Source of the DNA: Piromyces finnis finn
Lineage: Eukaryota > Fungi > Neocallimastigomycota
Assembly (NCBI GenBank): GCA_002104945.1
Contig: MCFH01000032.1
Coordinates: 124,001 to 188,000, forward strand
Length of the DNA: 64,000 bases
Reading direction: 5' to 3'
Part shown: piece by piece, positions 1,890-31,655 of the stretch
Layout: every line of letters starts with the position of its first letter
Position numbering within the stretch: the first letter of the stretch is position 1
Made by a program: the position numbers and the translations under genes
The notes under the pieces: generated by a model
Database searches by the model: none
Seen by the model: only the letters and a program-made list of their open reading frames with translations
What the model was told of the DNA's origin: nothing

Positions 1890-3760
1890 ATGAATTTAGA
1901 ATTATTAGGTAAAATTTAAACAATTATTAAATTCTCTTTATACATAGTAACTTTTAATAATTTTTTAAAAAAATACATTCTAATAAATGTTACTTTAAAA
2001 AAAAAAAAAAAGATCCATTTCAACAAGAAGAAGTACCAGATATTATTAATAGTAATTTAGAAGATGGAGGAAGTGTAATAACATGTGCATTTAATAGACG
2101 AGGCGATTACGTAGCAGGAGGTTGTGTAGATGGTAGATGTCTTGTATGGGATTTTGAAACAACAGGAATAATAAGAGAATTTGATGGTCATGAAGATAAA
2201 GTAACTTCAATAAGGTAATAGGAAAAAAAAAAAAAATTGTATTTAAATTATTCATAAGCAAATGTTTAATTAATAATAATTGAAAATTAAATTCTTTAAT
2301 TTCATATATATATATTATAATCATTTATCTACACTTTATATTTTAAAAATAATTAATAATAATAATAAAACAAAAAAATTTAAATTCGCAATAATTATAA
2401 TATTCATTAGTTGGTCAAGGGATAGTAATTTTATATTATCATCTTCAAAAGACAAAAATTGTATAGTTTGGAACACAATATCAGAACAACAAGTTTGTAA
2501 ATTAAAGTTTGATACCCCAATAAAATTTGCATGTTTTCATCCAAAAAAAAAGTAATTGGTCATTTCATATAATTAATTCAGCAGTTAATCAATTTACAAA
2601 TTATTATAAAAAAAAAAAAAAGAAAGAAATTAACCCTGGTAATTTATAATATCATTAATATATATATATATATATATATTATTGAACCATATATATTATC
2701 GTCATTATCAAAAGAACTTTAATACTAGTATGTCCTCAAAAACATTTACCTATACTTGTTGATATTTCACCTCTGGATAAAGGAGAAAAAGAAATAAGGA
2801 CATTGGTTGAAATAGACAGAGTAGAAGTCGCAGCAAAGTAAATAGTCTTTGTTAACAAAAAAATAAATATATAATATTTAATATATATTATATATTATAT
2901 ATTAATGTTTCGAAATTTAAATAATAATATAAAATAAATAAAAACTTACATTATCCTTAAAAACAACATAAAGAACGGATTATCTAGCTTGCTTTTCGAG
3001 ATACGGAGAAAAAATATACTTTGGCTCGTCTAAAGGAAATATTTATGTATACGATTTAAATAAGCATAAGGTATAGTCATAGTTACCCTTTAATTATCAT
3101 TAAATATTATGAATACCTAAGAAGGATAAAAACATTTAAACTTTTGTCTAAAAAAAAAAAAAATTATTATTATTTATTTAAAATAAAATAATGATAAGTC
3201 GATTGACTCATTAAAAGTTAATGCAGGAAATTCAACTATAAAAAATATTCATATAAGTAAAAAGGGAAAGTACGTAAATCATCAAACATTTCAATTAACT
3301 TCTTAAATATTATATATAAATATATATTGCAATTTAATTTTTCATTATGATTATTATAATTATTGTTTCCGGAGGGTTTTTTGATACACTTTTTATTAAA
3401 TAAAATCATCATATTTATAATTATTTTTTATGATTCATTATAATAGAGATTTGTTGGTAAATTCAAGTGATAGACAAATACGAGTATTCACTATTGAGGA
3501 TAATGGAAAAATCGAACAACAAAATAAATTTCAGGATCCTGTAAATCAAATTCAGTGGGTTCAATGTTGTTTTAGTCCTAATGCTGATCTTGTTATAGGA
3601 GGTAAAATTATAAATTAATATAATAAATATTTTTAAATTATAAACAAAAAAAAGAGTCAATAATATAATTATATATATAAAATAAATAAAATATACAAAA
3701 AACAATAAATTATTAAAATACTATCAATTTTATATATCTTCAATATATTCAATATTTAAA

Positions 3761-3812
<52 letters not shown>

Positions 3813-4758
3813 TTAACTAATTTTAAATTAAATAGCTTCAGATACAAAACCATATAAAATCTATATATGGGATAAAGAAGATGGAAATTTAATGAGAATA
3901 TTAGAAGGATCACAAAATTCATTGGTTGATTTAGCAGTAAATATTAATTTAAAAATAATGATATACCACTATAATAATTATGGTGTTATCTATTTTTAAT
4001 TTGTTAGTTTTTTTTAAGAATGGAAAATGACTTAAAATATTTTATTTTTGTTATTGTTTTTATTGTTAATACTATGATAGTGGCATCCATTTAGACGTGA
4101 AATAATAACGGTTCCAAAGAACGATCCTATTGACGTATGGGTAACAACTTATCAAGAAAATTGGAGTGCTTTTGCACCAGGTAAATATACATTAAATATA
4201 TATATATTATATATATTATATATATATATATTTTTTTTTTGTTATATTATGGTATATTACACTTTATAAATCAAACGTATGATGACAAAATCTTAATATA
4301 TGTCTAATATTATTATATTTAATAAAATTTATTAAAAAAAAAAAAAAAAAAGATTTCCAAGAACTTGAAGAAAATATTGAATATATTGAAAGAGAGAACG
4401 AATTTGATATTGTAAATATTTTTAATCCTTTATTTATTATTATTGTTTGTTAATTAATTATTAATTAATTCATTTATTCATTCATAATTTAAATATTTTC
4501 AATTGTAAAAAGATAAATGAAAGTCAATTAAATCAATTAAAGCAACCAAAAGAACCAGAAGATGATGATGAAGATGAAGAAATCGACGTTTGTAATATTC
4601 AAAGAATAATATATAATAGTGATTCTGATTCAGAAGATGAAGAAATATTTTTTATTCCTGTTAAACCTGATGTCATGCAAAATAATCATGAATCTTATTC
4701 TCCTCAACATTCAACAGTACCAATGGATACACTATCAGAATTAAATGATTCTAGTTAA
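1890..4758 (+). CDS. SWD1: COMPASS/Set1C WD40 subunit Swd1 (RBBP5 ortholog), multi-exon
   Basis: Spliced translation begins MNLELL|DPFQQEEVPD...CAFNRRGDYVAGGCVDGRCLVWDFET...GHEDKVTSISWSRD. It contains the RBBP5 hallmark [28 protein letters not shown]. Canonical GT-AG introns; stop TAA at 4756-4758. Confidence 0.92.
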
Positions 4759-4963
4759 AAAAAAAAATTACATTCAAATATTTCGTTTTAAAAAAAAAAA
4801 AATATTAAATTATTCTATTCATTATATATCATTAATTGATTGTTAATAAAATTTTACACCATTTTTATATATAATAGTGTATATAAAAAAATAAGAATAT
4901 AACTACATCTATAGTTAAATAGTTTTAATGCTTTTTTTTTTAATAATTGTCATGAGAATAAAG

Positions 4964-4994
<31 letters not shown>

Positions 4995-16274: not shown

Positions 16275-16850
16275 TTAATTATATCTGAACCACATTTCAT
16301 TCTTATCATTCAAGATTTCTAAATAACCAGTAAAACCACCATAACAAGCAGACATTCCAATATCAATAATAATTAATTTATCATTACATCTGGTAATCAT
16401 TTCTTCATAGTTTTGAATAGTATGACCAACAATCATTCTTTTTGTCTAAATTATCATAAATAAATATAATGTTAATATAATCATTTATAATATAAATTAA
16501 TTGATGAAGAATATAAAAATAAATTATAATAATAAAAATAATAATACTATTGATAAAACTAAAAATAAGTACTTACAATTTGTAAAAGAACGGTTTTCTT
16601 TAGCAATCTATTGACTCATTTTATCAATAATTTTTGCATTACGTAAAATAGTAACTAATTTTTGATAATCTTCATGAATATCACCGAAAGCAACAACACG
16701 TTTATAATCCTTTTTAGAGAGTTTCTTTTGATGACCACGACTAAGTAAGTTATCTTTCCAGTGGAAAATAGAATTAAGTTTGTTTGATTTAAATTTTGTA
16801 CAAAGAAGCGTCTTGAGTATTGGAAATTCCTTTAAAGTTTCATTTTTGTT
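16275..16850 (-). pseudogene. Metallophosphoesterase (Shewanella-like PPP phosphatase family) pseudogene
   Basis: RVVAFGDIHEDY motif followed by an in-frame TAG and a frameshift. Second exon RMIVGHTIQ...RCNDKLIIIDIGMSACYGG. The central GDxxDRG and GNHE motifs are absent. Confidence 0.75.
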
Positions 16851-17131: not shown

Positions 17132-20100
17132 TTATATGTTATATAGAATTCCTTTAGAACAGTATAATCTAAAGTTTATTGATTGACCTAATTTAATATC
17201 ACATCCTTTTTCTTGTAATTTTGCTTCTAATAAACTTATTTCATTATCAAACATTTCTTCATTTTCTTTAGTACAAGTTAACTCTTTTCTCCATAATTCT
17301 GGTTTATACGATAACATGTTAAAAATACTCCATTCATAGTTTTTAAATTCATCACTTATTAAATATCTAGATATAACCTTTTGAATAGCGTAAAAATAAT
17401 CCTTTTGTTTAATAAAAAGATTATTTTTTTTAAAATATTCATCCAAAATATTAATTTGTTGTTCGTCCAATTCATTATTGGCTTTACTTGAAACGTATTT
17501 CTCGATATTTTTAAAATTTTTTGCTTCTAAATAGTCATATATATTAATTAATTGATTTAATTTAATTTTGCATGAATCCTTCTTATGAACCTCAAGAATA
17601 AATTGATAAAACTCTTCATCTAGTTTACCGCTTTTCCTGGGTAATTTATCTATTTCATCCATTAAAATTTCATCTCCATTAATATTTTTTTCATTTGCAA
17701 AATATACAAATAGATTTTGTAAATTGCTTAAAATAGAATAGATATCAATTGATGTTGCTATTATAGCATGTTTGATACATTTTTTATCTTCATTGGATAA
17801 ACGTTTTTCCTTTTGTAGCTTTTGTTTGAAATTTAGTACAATATTAAAGTCTTTGGTAAATCTTTCATATTTATATGAAATAAAGTTTTGTTCATCTTTA
17901 GATTTTAACAATATTTTCCCTGGAAGTAATAGATTACAAAGTTCTACTTCAATTCTTTGAAAATCATAAACCACATTTTTATAATTGGTATAACTAAGTT
18001 TTCCGTTTTTTTCCTTAAAGTATTTATTATATGAAAATACAGAGATAACATCCTTGATTGAGCCATAAAGATCATTATTAATATTAAATGAGATAATTTC
18101 GTTGTATGTTGTATCTTGAACCGTATTATAGTTTTCTAATTGATTTTGAAAAGGTTTCAAGTAATATTTTAGATTATTTTCCGGAATCAATGATTTTAAA
18201 ATTTCATTATGAATAGAAATAATATCGTTATAATAGGTAGCTATGTATTTTCCATAACCATCTTCGACAGTATCATTTAAAACATATGCCAGGCAATCAT
18301 TTTCATCAATATTCTTTGGAGTTAATTCACCATGACAATCAAAGTTGGTTAAAATTTCAAATATATTATTCCAACCTTTTTTAAAATTTACAAAAAGATT
18401 TTTCATTTTTTCATCCTTTTCTAGCTCACTTTTTATACTTATTTGTTTTGCTTCTATTCTTGCTAATTTATTGGAATACTTTTCCAATACATATACAACA
18501 AATGGGTTTATGAATTGGAAACTTTCCAAGATTTTTATTTTATCAGGCATTTTGTGGGAATATTTGAAATAAGTAGTGAGTACAGGATATTTGTACACCT
18601 CATCGGGAATGTCATTAAATAATTTATAAAATTCATCGTATGTAGAGTAATTTACAGCATAAAAATATCTTATCAAAGGAAACTCGTTATTAGGTAGACG
18701 TTCAATGTCAGAGGTTTCTTCTAAAATGCATTTTATGGTGAAGTCATCGTAATTAAGAATGTCATTTCTATCTTTTATGGATTGTTGATAGAAATTATTA
18801 AAATTGGATTCTATAAGAGCAGATTCAATTATTTCATTACATTCTTTTTCAAATTGGTTTCTTTCCTCCGCTGTCACCATCTTCATATCATTACTTAATA
18901 TTAAGTGGGCAATCTTTGGAATTATCATATTTAAAAAGCATGGAACTTTATTTTCAACACCTCTTCTTCCCAACTCAATATTTAATGTATGCCAGATATC
19001 ATTTAAAATTGAAAGCATTGATTGATTGGAATCTAAATACGAAAATTCTTTTAATCCATTTTCCCCAATATATTTTAATTTTCCGTCAATGTATAGGCAT
19101 GAGAAAAAAATAAAACTTAATATTCTATAGGTAACATTAGAAATATTTCTTATTTTCTTGTGAAAATTATGGAAACAGTTTTTGTGTAATCTTCTAAATC
19201 CAGGAGTTTCTTCATTTATTTTTTGATTAATATCATTTAATAAATTATCAATAAGTATACCAGGAATATGTGGGAAACGATTTCTTTCCTCTTGATTTGA
19301 ATAAATTCTCATATGACCTTCTCTTGGAATCAATATATGATTATTACCACTGATATATTGTTTACAATTGGTACAAATAAATATTCCCCCAGGTTGTGTA
19401 CAATTCTCCAGATAGTATGACTTTCCACAATCACATACATAGGCACCAAATAGGCGGGTACTATTATTGTTAAAGTATTCTTGAATTTCTTTTGCCGAAT
19501 CCACTAATAGAGTATGGTATATTTCACCACCTGGAATGTATAAATTTTTAAGATTTTCCACAACATTATCTGAAATAATATCAGAATAAAAGGTATTTGG
19601 CTTTGAAAGTGAACTTATTAACGCAAATTTATTGGCGTACATTAACACTTCGAATTCTGTATTGGATAAATTTTTAATAGTATTATACTCACTGCTTAAT
19701 GAGTCGTAGTCATAATAAATTTTTAAAATATTTTCGGAAGGTGTCGGTAAATTTAATTTACATAGTGTTTCGGTAAGATAGCAGCATAACTTTTTATAGT
19801 ATGATTCGTTAAATTTTTCCGACTGAATGAAACTTGATATTTCTTTATTTATTATCAAGTCATAAAAGACCAAAAGTGTATCTTTATTTAACATCTCATT
19901 TAGTTCATGATCATTTTTATTTTGAAATTCAGCAACTTTATTTATGTTATACAATTCACTAAACTTTTTATATAGTTCGAAGGAGCCCTCTTGTAAAAAT
20001 AAATGGTTTAAACCGAAATTTGACTTTTCTGAAAAATCAAAATCATTTATAAATAACTGCTTTTTATTTATAAATTTCAGTAAATCTGAATAATCTTTTA

Positions 20101-21619
20101 TAATGATTTTATTTAATACCCTCAAGATATAAATCTTTACTATTTTATTCAGGTTTGTTTTGTCTAAAAATTCAAATACTTGAGATAAATTTAAATTTGT
20201 AGCACCTTCCTTATGGAGAATATTGCATAGGTGGAAACAATAACATTTTATATATGAAATTGTAAATAATATGTTTATCTTGTTTTTGCCTGTGATCTCA
20301 CATTTATTCACTTCTATATAGGTAACAAATTTTTTAAATAGAAGGAAGGATTGCTTTAAAATCTTGTCTTCATCATCATACTGAGAATCAAAATAATTGA
20401 TGACATAGTCATTAAATACTGATATTAAAACCTCGTCAACCAAATAATTAGTAGTTTGATTTAAGTATTTAAAAATACTATTGATGTTTCTATCATTTTG
20501 TAGTTCTAAGAAATTAAAACCATTTAAATCATTGGGAACATCATTATTGTTATTATTATTTTTGTTCTTATATTTAAAAATTGTGTATTTATTGAAAAGG
20601 GATTTAAAAAAATTTTTAAATTTAAAAATATTCCCTTCTTGTGAACAAACAGTCTTTAAAAGTTGGCTTTGATATTTATCATCTTTACATTCATTTATTT
20701 TATTATTTATTAATTTTACCACTAAAGTTTCATAGATATATGATGGTAATTTTTCTTTTAAGAAGTTGAATTCCTCTTCAATCAGATGATCATTAGCATT
20801 TCCTAAAAGATAATAATAGTGTAAATTAAAATGTTCATTTTCTTTCTTTAAAATTCCTAAGTAATAGGATAAATAAGATTTTAAAGAAACAATGGTATCA
20901 TTAAAGGCTTCTTTAACGTAGATAAAATCTTGAATATAGAATAGTTGCTTAAATTCTAATTTCAATTTAAAACTTGTTTTCATCGATAAATCCCTTAATT
21001 CTTTTAATTTTTCTGTAAATAAATCAATACTTTGAATAGATACATCATTGTTATTGAACCATTCTTCAAGATTAAGAATATGATTAAAGGTACATTCATA
21101 TAAATTATATATAATTTGTATCTCCCTTGAAATTTCACTTTTTCCTATATAAATTAGATTTATTGTTTTTACATCAAATTTAGAAAGTGAATTGAAATAA
21201 TCAATATACTCTGTCAAACCCATTAGATAGTCTTTAAATGACACAATAAATAAAACAAACTTTGCTACATTTTTCTTTGTATAATTATTTAAAGATCTAA
21301 ATAATAAATTATAGAGCCTAAGATACAATTTAAACATATATTCATTAGCTATTGGTTTTTTAGATTTAGATAAATAAAAGTAAATATAATCCCTCAATAC
21401 ATTATATTCATTGTTATTATATTTATTAAATACGACTTCATTTAAGAATATTTCATCATTGAATTTCTTAATAATAATATCATTTTCAAAATTCTTATTA
21501 AAAACTAAAGCTTCAAAGTAAGACTTTTTCAAGCTTATAATATATTCAAATATGACCTTGAATTCGGTACATGATCTATCATTTTGTTGTTGTTGTTGTT
21601 GTTGTTGATTATAATTCAT
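17132..21619 (-). CDS. RNF213 (mysterin)-like E3 module: RZ-type zinc finger plus C-terminal domain, lacking the AAA+ core (1495 aa, intronless ORF)
   Basis: CDCGKSYYLENCTQPGGIFICTNCKQYISGNNH (19337-19435) has RZ-finger spacing. Downstream blocks (YRILSFIF, LARIEAKQISI, FKKGWNNI, YDFQRIEVELCNLLLPGK) recall the RNF213 C-terminal region. Recognised from memory, no search run. Confidence 0.75.
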   Translation of the reverse strand: MNYNQQQQQQQQNDRSCTEFKVIFEYIISLKKSYFEALVFNKNFENDIIIKKFNDEIFLNEVVFNKYNNNEYNVLRDYIYFYLSKSKKPIANEYMFKLYLRLYNLLFRSLNNYTKKNVAKFVLFIVSFKDYLMGLTEYIDYFNSLSKFDVKTINLIYIGKSEISREIQIIYNLYECTFNHILNLEEWFNNNDVSIQSIDLFTEKLKELRDLSMKTSFKLKLEFKQLFYIQDFIYVKEAFNDTIVSLKSYLSYYLGILKKENEHFNLHYYYLLGNANDHLIEEEFNFLKEKLPSYIYETLVVKLINNKINECKDDKYQSQLLKTVCSQEGNIFKFKNFFKSLFNKYTIFKYKNKNNNNNNDVPNDLNGFNFLELQNDRNINSIFKYLNQTTNYLVDEVLISVFNDYVINYFDSQYDDEDKILKQSFLLFKKFVTYIEVNKCEITGKNKINILFTISYIKCYCFHLCNILHKEGATNLNLSQVFEFLDKTNLNKIVKIYILRVLNKIIIKDYSDLLKFINKKQLFINDFDFSEKSNFGLNHLFLQEGSFELYKKFSELYNINKVAEFQNKNDHELNEMLNKDTLLVFYDLIINKEISSFIQSEKFNESYYKKLCCYLTETLCKLNLPTPSENILKIYYDYDSLSSEYNTIKNLSNTEFEVLMYANKFALISSLSKPNTFYSDIISDNVVENLKNLYIPGGEIYHTLLVDSAKEIQEYFNNNSTRLFGAYVCDCGKSYYLENCTQPGGIFICTNCKQYISGNNHILIPREGHMRIYSNQEERNRFPHIPGILIDNLLNDINQKINEETPGFRRLHKNCFHNFHKKIRNISNVTYRILSFIFFSCLYIDGKLKYIGENGLKEFSYLDSNQSMLSILNDIWHTLNIELGRRGVENKVPCFLNMIIPKIAHLILSNDMKMVTAEERNQFEKECNEIIESALIESNFNNFYQQSIKDRNDILNYDDFTIKCILEETSDIERLPNNEFPLIRYFYAVNYSTYDEFYKLFNDIPDEVYKYPVLTTYFKYSHKMPDKIKILESFQFINPFVVYVLEKYSNKLARIEAKQISIKSELEKDEKMKNLFVNFKKGWNNIFEILTNFDCHGELTPKNIDENDCLAYVLNDTVEDGYGKYIATYYNDIISIHNEILKSLIPENNLKYYLKPFQNQLENYNTVQDTTYNEIISFNINNDLYGSIKDVISVFSYNKYFKEKNGKLSYTNYKNVVYDFQRIEVELCNLLLPGKILLKSKDEQNFISYKYERFTKDFNIVLNFKQKLQKEKRLSNEDKKCIKHAIIATSIDIYSILSNLQNLFVYFANEKNINGDEILMDEIDKLPRKSGKLDEEFYQFILEVHKKDSCKIKLNQLINIYDYLEAKNFKNIEKYVSSKANNELDEQQINILDEYFKKNNLFIKQKDYFYAIQKVISRYLISDEFKNYEWSIFNMLSYKPELWRKELTCTKENEEMFDNEISLLEAKLQEKGCDIKLGQSINFRLYCSKGILYNI

Positions 21620-21884
21620 TTGTAGGTAATTAAATTTAAGTAAGTCTTATAATTTTATGAATTATAAATATTATAAATAAAATAAAAAAAAAAAAAAAAA
21701 ACTTTAAACAAATTTTTCATATACTTTTTTTTTATAATTCTCTTTCTGTATGTTTTTAAGATTATATAGAAAATTGGACTTTTAATTTTATTCTAATAAA
21801 AAAAAATAGCCAATAATCAAAGGGTTATACAAAAGTAAAAGTGTGTAGAATAAATAATGAATTATGGATTAATAAATTAGATAT

Positions 21885-25521: not shown

Positions 25522-25603
25522 GTCACTTTGGCGGAGTGGTTAACGCGGTGGCCTGCTAAGCCATTTCCCTTTGGGAGCGCAGGTTCGAGTCCTGCAGGTG
25601 ACG
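25522..25603 (+). tRNA. tRNA-Ser(GCT), second copy
   Basis: Identical to 5212-5293 except one base in the variable arm. Confidence 0.95.
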
Positions 25604-25613
25604 AATGATATTT

Positions 25614-25686
25614 GCGAAGTTGGCGCAGTCGGCAGCGCGTAAGTCTCATAATCTTAAGGTCGTGAGTTCGAACCTCACACTTCGCA
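25614..25686 (+). tRNA. tRNA-Met(CAT) elongator, second copy
   Basis: Matches 5129-5201; followed by a T-run Pol III terminator. Confidence 0.95.
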
Positions 25687-26440
25687 TTTTTATACATTAT
25701 TTAAACTACAAAAATAAAGAAATCTAAATATTTTAATGAATTACTTTTTATAAAGTTTTTTGAAATGCTCAATTCCTTTCTTTTTGTAAAAAATAATGCT
25801 ATATCTAATAAAATAGTTTTAATAAAACAACTTTAAAAATAATATTTATTTTAAAATAAATCTTATTTAATGGCTGGCTCTTTAAGAGAATTATTTAATA
25901 TTCCTCCATTCCTACATTACATTAATATTACATTTAATATTCATTACATTATTGTAATGATCATGTGTTATTATTCATAAATCTATGTTATTTTGTTTTT
26001 ATATGATAGTAAATATATTAAATGAAATAGTAGTTTTTATTACCTCTATTTTTTTTCCATTTTATTTTTTTTAAAAAAAAAGATAAAATATTAAAAAGCA
26101 CAAGTCGTCACGTTGGTGTCATAACTATAATTATTTTTTTTTTCTAAAAAGCAAAAAGGTTTGTAGAAAAAAAAAAAAGTGGAAGGATTATCTATTTAAT
26201 ATAATATCTAATAATATTGTAATGGAAGAGAAAGAGTATTAAGAAACAAACAAACAAACAAAAAAAAAAAAAAAAACAGAAAAAGAAATGGTGTAATCTT
26301 TTTTTTTGAGAGTATAGATTAAAAAAAGTTTTTTTTTTTTTTTTTTTTTTTTTTGATTAATTAAAATGAAATAATTAATAATTGAAACAATTGTAATTTG
26401 TCCCATTACATAAAAGTTAATGATAAATAAAACTTTAGTA

Positions 26441-26605: not shown

Positions 26606-27093
26606 ATGAATCAATCTTTTATGCAATCTCAAATGGCTTCAGCACACCAAACTGTAAGTCAACAAGTTACTAGTCAACCAGCTCAACAACAAGCCGTTCA
26701 ATTCCAAACCATTCAAAATTATAATACATCAATTTTACATCCACAACCAACAAGAAATATACATACTCCTAAACCACCAGTCGGTTCAGATGAATGGTTA
26801 AAACAACGTCGTGCTAACCACAAAGAAGTTGAACGTAGAAGACGTGAAACTATTAATGAAGGTATTAATGAATTAGCTAAACTCATTCCGGAAGATGAAA
26901 AGAATAAAGGAAGAATTATTGCACGTGCTGTTCAATATATTCAACATTTAAAGGAACAAGAAACAACTAATCTTGAAAAATGGACTTTAGAAAAATTATT
27001 ATGTGAACAAGCGTAAGTTAATAAACAAATAATAATAATAATAATACTAGATATATATATATAATAAAACAAATGAACAAATGAACAAACAAA

Positions 27094-28221: not shown

Positions 28222-31655
<3,434 letters not shown>

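Follow-up and report, generated by a model that had tools for sequence, protein, structure and literature searches.

The window analysed here is a stretch of 64,000 nucleotides from the gut fungus Piromyces finnis (contig MCFH01000032.1, positions 124,001 to 188,000), and all window coordinates below refer to it. At 17132..21619 on its minus strand lies an AAA-less, RING-less RNF213-like ubiquitin ligase (E3) module gene, an intact intronless open reading frame (ORF) of 1,495 amino acids (aa) plus stop. Of RNF213, a 0.6-MDa enzyme, the ORF retains the ligase part, with helical E3 scaffold, RZ finger, and C-terminal region, and lacks the N-arm, the six-AAA ring, the hinge, and the RING. The first-pass annotation of this DNA had described the gene as a stand-alone RNF213-like RZ-finger module in an intronless ORF, and indeed no introns are needed: the frame runs from ATG to TAA with no interruption over 1,495 codons. 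The window is very AT-rich (12-34% GC, with about 20% around the ORF), and at such a composition a stop is expected at about one codon in ten, so that an open frame of 1,495 codons is far above chance. In a Pfam scan the ZnF_RZ-type finger was the sole domain of the ORF; AAA+ and RING domains were not found.

The RZ-type zinc finger is of a CxC variant and occupies aa 726-764 (19328..19444, minus strand), where Pfam PF20173 matches (E 6.9e-5, 22.8 bits). Its motif, CDCGKSYYLENCTQPGGIFICTNCKQYISGNNH, spans aa 729-761 (19337-19435 of the window). With the first Cys taken as position 0, further Cys residues stand at +2, +11, +20, and +23, a Lys stands at +4, and a His at +32. The fungal RZ profile was aligned by HMMER to human RNF213 (WYTCPNGHPCSVGECGRPMEQSICIDCHAPIGGIDH; C-PNG-H...C-GRP...C-xx-C...IGG-xx-H) in the same register, which bears out the spacing proposed earlier, and a search of PDB sequences with the family RZ profile gave RNF213 as the top match (E 9e-6). 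The codon of Cys740 (C740; 19400..19402, minus strand) stands where RNF213 has its transthiolation cysteine (human C4516, mouse C4462), and in the family alignment this position is nearly invariant.

The PF20173 ligand set consists of Cys, His (+4), Cys (+20), and Cys (+23), with the catalytic Cys at +11. The ORF has Cys at 0, +11, +20, and +23, retaining all RZ cysteines, and Lys at +4. The first-pass annotation was correct that the catalytic-position Cys is kept, that Lys stands at the position of human H4509, and that there is an extra Cys at +2. Among 73 parsable family members 71 have Cys at +2, and 65 of the 73 are also without His at +4; His at +4 alongside Cys at +2 occurs in one cluster only. 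The pairing of Lys in place of His with a Cys at +2 is thus a family-wide state and not peculiar to the ORF copy.

It is useful to place this finger among the relatives of the whole protein. A word search gave 17 of them, the named ones being Orpinomyces gene models and the rest metagenome proteins, and 16 of these have a precomputed Pfam RZ match. An exhaustive profile search with aa 400-1495 gave 1,119 representatives at E<=1e-3. The survey of paralogs proposed in the first-pass annotation has in this way also yielded AAA-bearing full-length members, one of them from Piromyces finnis. The public records for the family carry automatic names only ('hypothetical protein', 'RZ-type domain-containing protein'), and a literature search found no paper on RNF213 in fungi.

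Five full-length giants carry the query region at their C-terminus: P0019 (4,747 aa), P0020 (4,998 aa), P0021 (5,073 aa), P0032 (5,020 aa), and P0124 (4,566 aa). Here, P0019 is the Piromyces finnis protein ORX57745.1, labelled 'RZ-type domain-containing protein', and P0020 falls in a cluster with proteins of Neocallimastix. P0019, P0020, P0021, and P0124 each have an RZ finger and two Walker A motifs; P0032 has the Walker A motifs, and the pattern search found no RZ finger in it. No RING was found in any of the five. The upstream part of P0124 matches RNF213 AAA3-AAA5 at E 1e-101. A shorter relative, P0008 (2,608 aa), can be aligned colinearly to the ORF over aa 74-1483 (39% identity), and in front of this region it is longer by about 1,150 residues. 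This N-terminal extension matches RNF213 of human and mouse, beginning shortly before AAA4 (human 2654-3220, E 4e-64), and contains a Walker A motif, GKPGCSKS, and a Walker B motif, YFDEMG. The closest relative of the ORF, P0002 (53% identity), is encoded on contig L002 by a long gene that includes AAA3 (GECGCGKT, matching human RNF213 2426-2506).

The ORF can be compared directly with the full-length fungal paralogs ORX57745.1, Neocallimastix KAL6625950.1, and the metagenomic P0021. It shares with them 40-48% identity over the C-terminal 1,100 aa or so, an RZ finger of the CxC variant, and the absence of a RING. In contrast to the ORF, these paralogs have about 3,400 more N-terminal residues, including the Walker A motifs of AAA3 (GETGCGKT) and AAA4 (GKPGCSKS), and their AAA3/AAA4 units are clearly homologous to those of mammalian RNF213. 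In P0021, ORF aa 47-347 align to residues 3495-3825 and aa 367-740 to residues 3924-4293, which puts the start of the ORF at about residue 3,450. By these alignments the ORF corresponds to the last part, equivalent to about 1,600 residues, of an RNF213-like architecture of about 5,000 residues. The ORF lines up colinearly with P0008 and P0021, the upstream parts of the long paralogs match AAA3-AAA5, and the RZ finger is found at the equivalent place; the ORF thus shares descent with RNF213, the homology following by transitivity through the paralogs.

One giant was found in a different genomic setting. P0124 is encoded at L007:1783-15483 (plus strand) as a 4,566-aa single ORF, on a 70-kb, 37% GC metagenome contig of a eukaryote. 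It has the AAA3/AAA4 Walker motifs and the CxC RZ variant and no RING. The presence of this finger on such a contig means that the variant is not confined to AT-rich gut fungi. Ciliate-type telomeres were looked for on the related contigs and not found, a result without weight for the origin of these contigs.

The second line of evidence comes from predicted structures. The ORF was folded with AlphaFold2 (AF2) and family alignments as two overlapping models, aa 1-740 and aa 640-1495. The first model (mc2b68aeb832a; mean predicted local distance difference test score, pLDDT, 76) includes the helical E3 scaffold before the RZ finger, aa 9-669 (19613..21595, minus strand). VIA aligned this segment to human RNF213 3701-4457 (9jwg_A) with Z 10.1 over 539 residues, the runner-up having Z 5.4. 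In the Foldseek search with this model RNF213 was ranked first at just E 0.08. The fold is helical, and a clear separation came from the VIA re-alignment only. The second model (me518874affea, pLDDT 75) includes the RZ finger and the following E3-shell/core, aa 641-1241 (17897..19699, minus strand). The nine best Foldseek matches of this model were all RNF213 (E 4e-11 to 1e-5), with the next at 0.07, and VIA aligned it to human RNF213 4424-4973 with Z 13.3 over 401 residues against Z 5.1 for the runner-up. Both VIA alignments are colinear on human RNF213 and join at the RZ finger. The structural comparison suggested by the first-pass annotation has therefore matched RNF213 only, for both models, and as modelled the ORF carries the RNF213-specific helical E3 scaffold (E3-back/shell/core), a fold without another counterpart in the PDB.

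The remaining C-terminal part of about 250 aa (17135..17896, minus strand) was delimited in the family alignment and includes a family-invariant Trp, W1443. [quoted passage not shown] In the mouse protein the hinge extends to residue 3588, followed by the E3 module at 3589-4926 with the RING at 3940-3999, and then by the CTD (PMC7311170). With a mouse-to-human offset of about 54 residues, the ORF starts about 60 residues inside the E3 module and keeps nearly the whole of it. In the AF2 model the place of the RING, as estimated from colinearity, is occupied by no more than a short loop of low confidence (about aa 351-363). No RING was matched by Pfam in the ORF, P0019, or P0124, or by pattern in ten long members of the family. 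The RING is dispensable for RNF213 activity (PMC7311170).

The comparison with mammalian RNF213 (mysterin; PDB 9JWG, 6TAX, 7OIK) can be summarized as follows. The E3 scaffold fold on either side of the RZ finger is colinear, the spacing of RZ cysteines is identical, and the catalytic-position Cys is present. Unlike the mammalian protein, the ORF has no N-arm, AAA ring, hinge, or RING, and its finger has the +4 His replaced and a Cys at +2. Another family with an RZ-type zinc finger (PF20173) is ZNFX1, which is an SF1 (superfamily 1) helicase with NFX1-type fingers. Pfam found neither an SF1 helicase core nor NFX1-type fingers in the ORF or in the long paralogs, and both the paralog N-termini and the folds match RNF213.

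How did the ORF come to lack the motor? A tree built on the C-terminal region places the ORF in one group with P0002 and P0003 (support 100), and the sister of this group is the full-length P0021 (support 100). P0003 is a shorter module-only relative of 1,200 aa which starts at the equivalent of ORF aa 367 (Q367) and is found on 17 contigs. On three contigs from different Joint Genome Institute (JGI) samples (L003:8332-13603, L004, and L006) it has the same divergent 1,149-aa neighbour gene about 1.7 kb upstream, and no family-like sequence was found between the two. Because the gene of P0002 is long within the group (ORF,(P0002,P0003)), the ORF and P0003 were shortened independently.

Other members have been shortened too. 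The start of P0008 lies at AAA4, with 1.6 kb of DNA free of ORFs before it, and P0007 (about 2,600 aa) starts at the same point. A 2,044-aa form, the P0023 cluster, has been kept at at least 90% identity in three Neocallimastix species. Like the ORF, the P0003, P0008/P0007, and P0023 forms are 5′-shortened single ORFs with a normal C-terminus and an RZ finger. Their start points all differ from that of the ORF, whose boundary lies near the border of hinge and E3 and leaves the E3 module nearly whole. Truncation in this family has happened more than once, and the ORF is a 5′-truncated paralog in a large Neocallimastigomycota family rather than an isolated invention. The term "stand-alone" fits the locus, which is free of a motor, but should be qualified, since the ORF belongs to a multi-copy family with full-length AAA members.

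The 5′ end of the ORF deserves separate consideration, as the first-pass annotation had offered, as an alternative, that the ORF is a fragment of a larger gene joined through an AG acceptor upstream of the ATG. Homology to the paralogs begins at about aa 31-74, and the first 38 aa or so, rich in poly-Gln (21506..21619, minus strand), form a new N-terminus without counterpart in the paralogs. The AG is present at 21647-21646, read from the sequence, 26 nt from the ATG and overlapping an in-frame TAA at 21649-21647 (together 21646..21649, minus strand). An AG that overlaps an in-frame stop makes a splice formally possible, and the ORF could then be the last exon of a full-length RNF213-like gene with its AAA exons far upstream. 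This explanation is hardly credible in view of the locus. When the N-terminal parts (850-1,300 aa) of five long paralogs were searched against the 64-kb window by tblastn, there was no match elsewhere and no homologous upstream exon, in agreement with the earlier statement that a dynein-like AAA+ core is absent. No upstream exons were apparent in the 42 kb of the window on the 5′ side of the ORF. The ATG is preceded by some 4 kb of non-coding, AT-rich DNA; beyond it come a pair of tRNA genes and then, from position 26606, a gene on the opposite strand, all within 5 kb. Genes of this family consist of one unbroken ORF, up to 13.7 kb long, and the source's own gene model, P0001, uses the same ATG as the ORF. 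It is very unlikely that this locus hides a full-length gene, because AAA-like exons are missing upstream, the first 38 aa or so are unrelated to the paralogs, the gene model shares the ATG, and the family consists of single ORFs. The proposed joining to a larger gene through the AG is therefore not upheld.

The public gene model P0001 (1,188 aa; window 18056-21619, minus strand) is an exact prefix of the ORF, covering aa 1-1188. It ends where a GT follows codon 1188 (...ATC TCT | GTATTT), probably at a predicted intron. The final 307 aa, among them the presumed E2-docking region, are absent from the model, and homology to the paralogs continues in frame through these residues to the stop.

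Is the truncated gene maintained? Contigs of run X1 contain pieces identical to the ORF alongside pieces about 91-92% identical to it (window 18140-19499), which indicates a close paralog, an allele, or a sister strain. Between the ORF and this variant 19 of 35 differing codons are synonymous, and omega, computed from the 40 of 112 differences that were listed, is about 0.2-0.3 (p 6e-6 to 6e-4 against neutrality). We read these values as signs of purifying selection, and the ORF is apparently maintained. Run X1, which is guessed to be RNA, holds 47% of the sampled words of the ORF, the share for the flanks being estimated at less than 10%, and the DNA run X2 holds 92%. Transcription of the ORF, at a low level or under certain conditions, is probable. 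The variant of about 92% identity has the family-consensus Tyr at aa 1087, unlike the ORF.

The best explanation of these data, to which as a whole we assign a probability of about 0.6, is that the ORF is a maintained 5′-truncated paralog of the gut-fungal RNF213-like giants and that its RZ finger transfers ubiquitin through C740. Its part on identity and architecture, taken alone, is highly probable. The part on the catalytic mechanism is tentative, with the odds somewhat against it, and proceeds by analogy with the mouse enzyme. In the RZ domain of mouse RNF213 zinc is held by C4451, H4455, C4471, and C4474, and C4462, lying in a loop, receives ubiquitin from an E2 docked on the CTD (PMC12075652). 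In the fungal finger the Cys at +2 probably replaces the His at +4 as a zinc ligand: zinc would be bound by C729, C731, C749, and C752, with C731 in place of the His ligand of animal RNF213. An E2 docked on the C-terminal domain would load C740 with ubiquitin, which C740 would then hand to a substrate, as in the mouse protein. ATP binding to the AAA core switches on the E3 activity of mouse RNF213 (PMC12075652). With no AAA core, ATP gating of this type would be missing, and we prefer to see the product as a constitutive or partner-dependent ligase. An immune or antibacterial role, or the ubiquitylation of lipopolysaccharide (LPS), as raised in the first-pass annotation, is speculation.

Several observations weigh against this explanation as a whole, and they concern its identity, its persistence, and its activity. 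As to identity, the RZ match predicted earlier is found at aa 726-764, but its 22.8 bits lie below the PF20173 gathering score of 27 bits, so that the motif by itself is a lead and not a proof of family membership. Ten of the 11 relatives scanned pass this threshold (27.6-54.5 bits), and the ORF scores lowest of those scanned. A phmmer search of PDB sequences with the whole ORF gave no match, a profile of the C-terminal 1,400 aa gave none to RNF213, and neither did a profile of the CTD only, a region that also lies outside the rigid-body structural alignment. The likeness to animal RNF213 outside the RZ finger is consequently visible only via the AAA region of the paralogs and via the fold. 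The assignment to RNF213 is supported by relatives and folds and does not depend on the sub-threshold Pfam match.

As to persistence, searches of other species and of metagenomes (word search; related loci in JGI metagenomes) gave no close ortholog. The terminal branch of the ORF is 0.51, compared with 0.28-0.36 in its nearest kin, that is 1.4-1.8 times longer. Its words are almost absent from three further putative RNA runs of this organism, and X1, used in the form of assembled contigs, is RNA by guess only. The same facts are what would be expected of a functionless partial duplicate that is heading to decay and whose frame is still open through youth. Such a duplicate would also agree with the sub-threshold RZ score, with a public gene model that covers just aa 1-1188, and with a rate of private changes at conserved columns that is the highest but for one member. 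However, the long-form sister P0002 deviates at the same rate (9.8% of conserved columns, with 10.1% in the ORF, the changes being mostly conservative). The frame of 1,495 codons is intact at about 20% GC despite a difference of about 50% from the nearest known relatives, omega is about 0.25 against the variant of about 92% identity, and the ORF has gained its own start codon and N-terminus. Taking both sides together, we regard decay as improbable and the maintained paralog as the better account.

As to activity, the exchange of zinc ligands has been deduced from conservation and not from geometry or chemistry. The ORF alone has a Ser in the near-invariant IGG motif (G757S), and the ORF and its close kin are without the Gly after the catalytic-position Cys. 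Since the E3 activity of RNF213 is switched on by ATP in the AAA core, a module without this core might be inactive. This opens another explanation, namely a catalytically weak or dead derivative that serves as a regulator or decoy, titrating an E2, a substrate, or a pathogen factor, or pairing with the full-length paralogs. The requirement of RNF213 for ATP binding in a core which the ORF lacks (PMC12075652) fits such a role, as does an RZ finger with the lowest Pfam score of those scanned, and purifying selection on the ORF would fit a decoy as well as a ligase. On the other hand, the ORF has kept the catalytic-position Cys and the four presumed zinc cysteines, which a pure decoy would not need. 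We consider the decoy or regulator unlikely, although it deserves serious attention, and retain the maintained paralog with a presumed ligase function as the preferred explanation.

About 4 kb upstream of the RNF213-like ORF, at 25522-25687 (plus strand), the genes for tRNA-Ser(GCT) and tRNA-Met(CAT) lie 10 bp apart. The nearest upstream gene, at 26606-27016 (plus strand, opposite to the RNF213-like ORF), is an ORF of 136 aa that contains a stretch resembling a basic helix-loop-helix, ERRRRETINEGINELAKLIP. Just 3′ of the ORF and on the same strand, at about 16610-16760 (minus strand), there is a short coding stretch, KRVVAFGDIHEDYQKLVTILRNA. It resembles the N-terminal metal-binding motif of a calcineurin-like metallophosphoesterase and is probably the first exon of the next gene. 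A long tandem repeat at 28562-29015 (minus strand), which appears in ORF listings as (LFIY)n or (LFVC)n, is simple-sequence DNA and no gene.

The communication between motor and RZ finger in RNF213 is still unresolved (PMC12075652). The ORF provides a minimal construct of manageable size, with which one can ask if an E3 module is functional when the motor is missing, and it carries a natural variant of the zinc site, with Cys for His. At a broader scale, it may be that gut fungi repeatedly shed the RNF213-like motor and kept the short genes under selection, either as minimal ATP-independent RZ ligases or as regulators of the paralogs, with an all-Cys zinc site, in an expanded conflict-driven ubiquitylation system of a bacteria-dense habitat. 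In this full form the scenario is possible, yet we would lean against it. What the family does provide is a record of the RNF213 lineage outside animals, as an expanded family with repeated loss of the motor. To this the locus adds a near-complete motor-less E3 module, apparently under selection and one of several independent truncations, which is of moderate interest as a minimal RNF213 E3 module.

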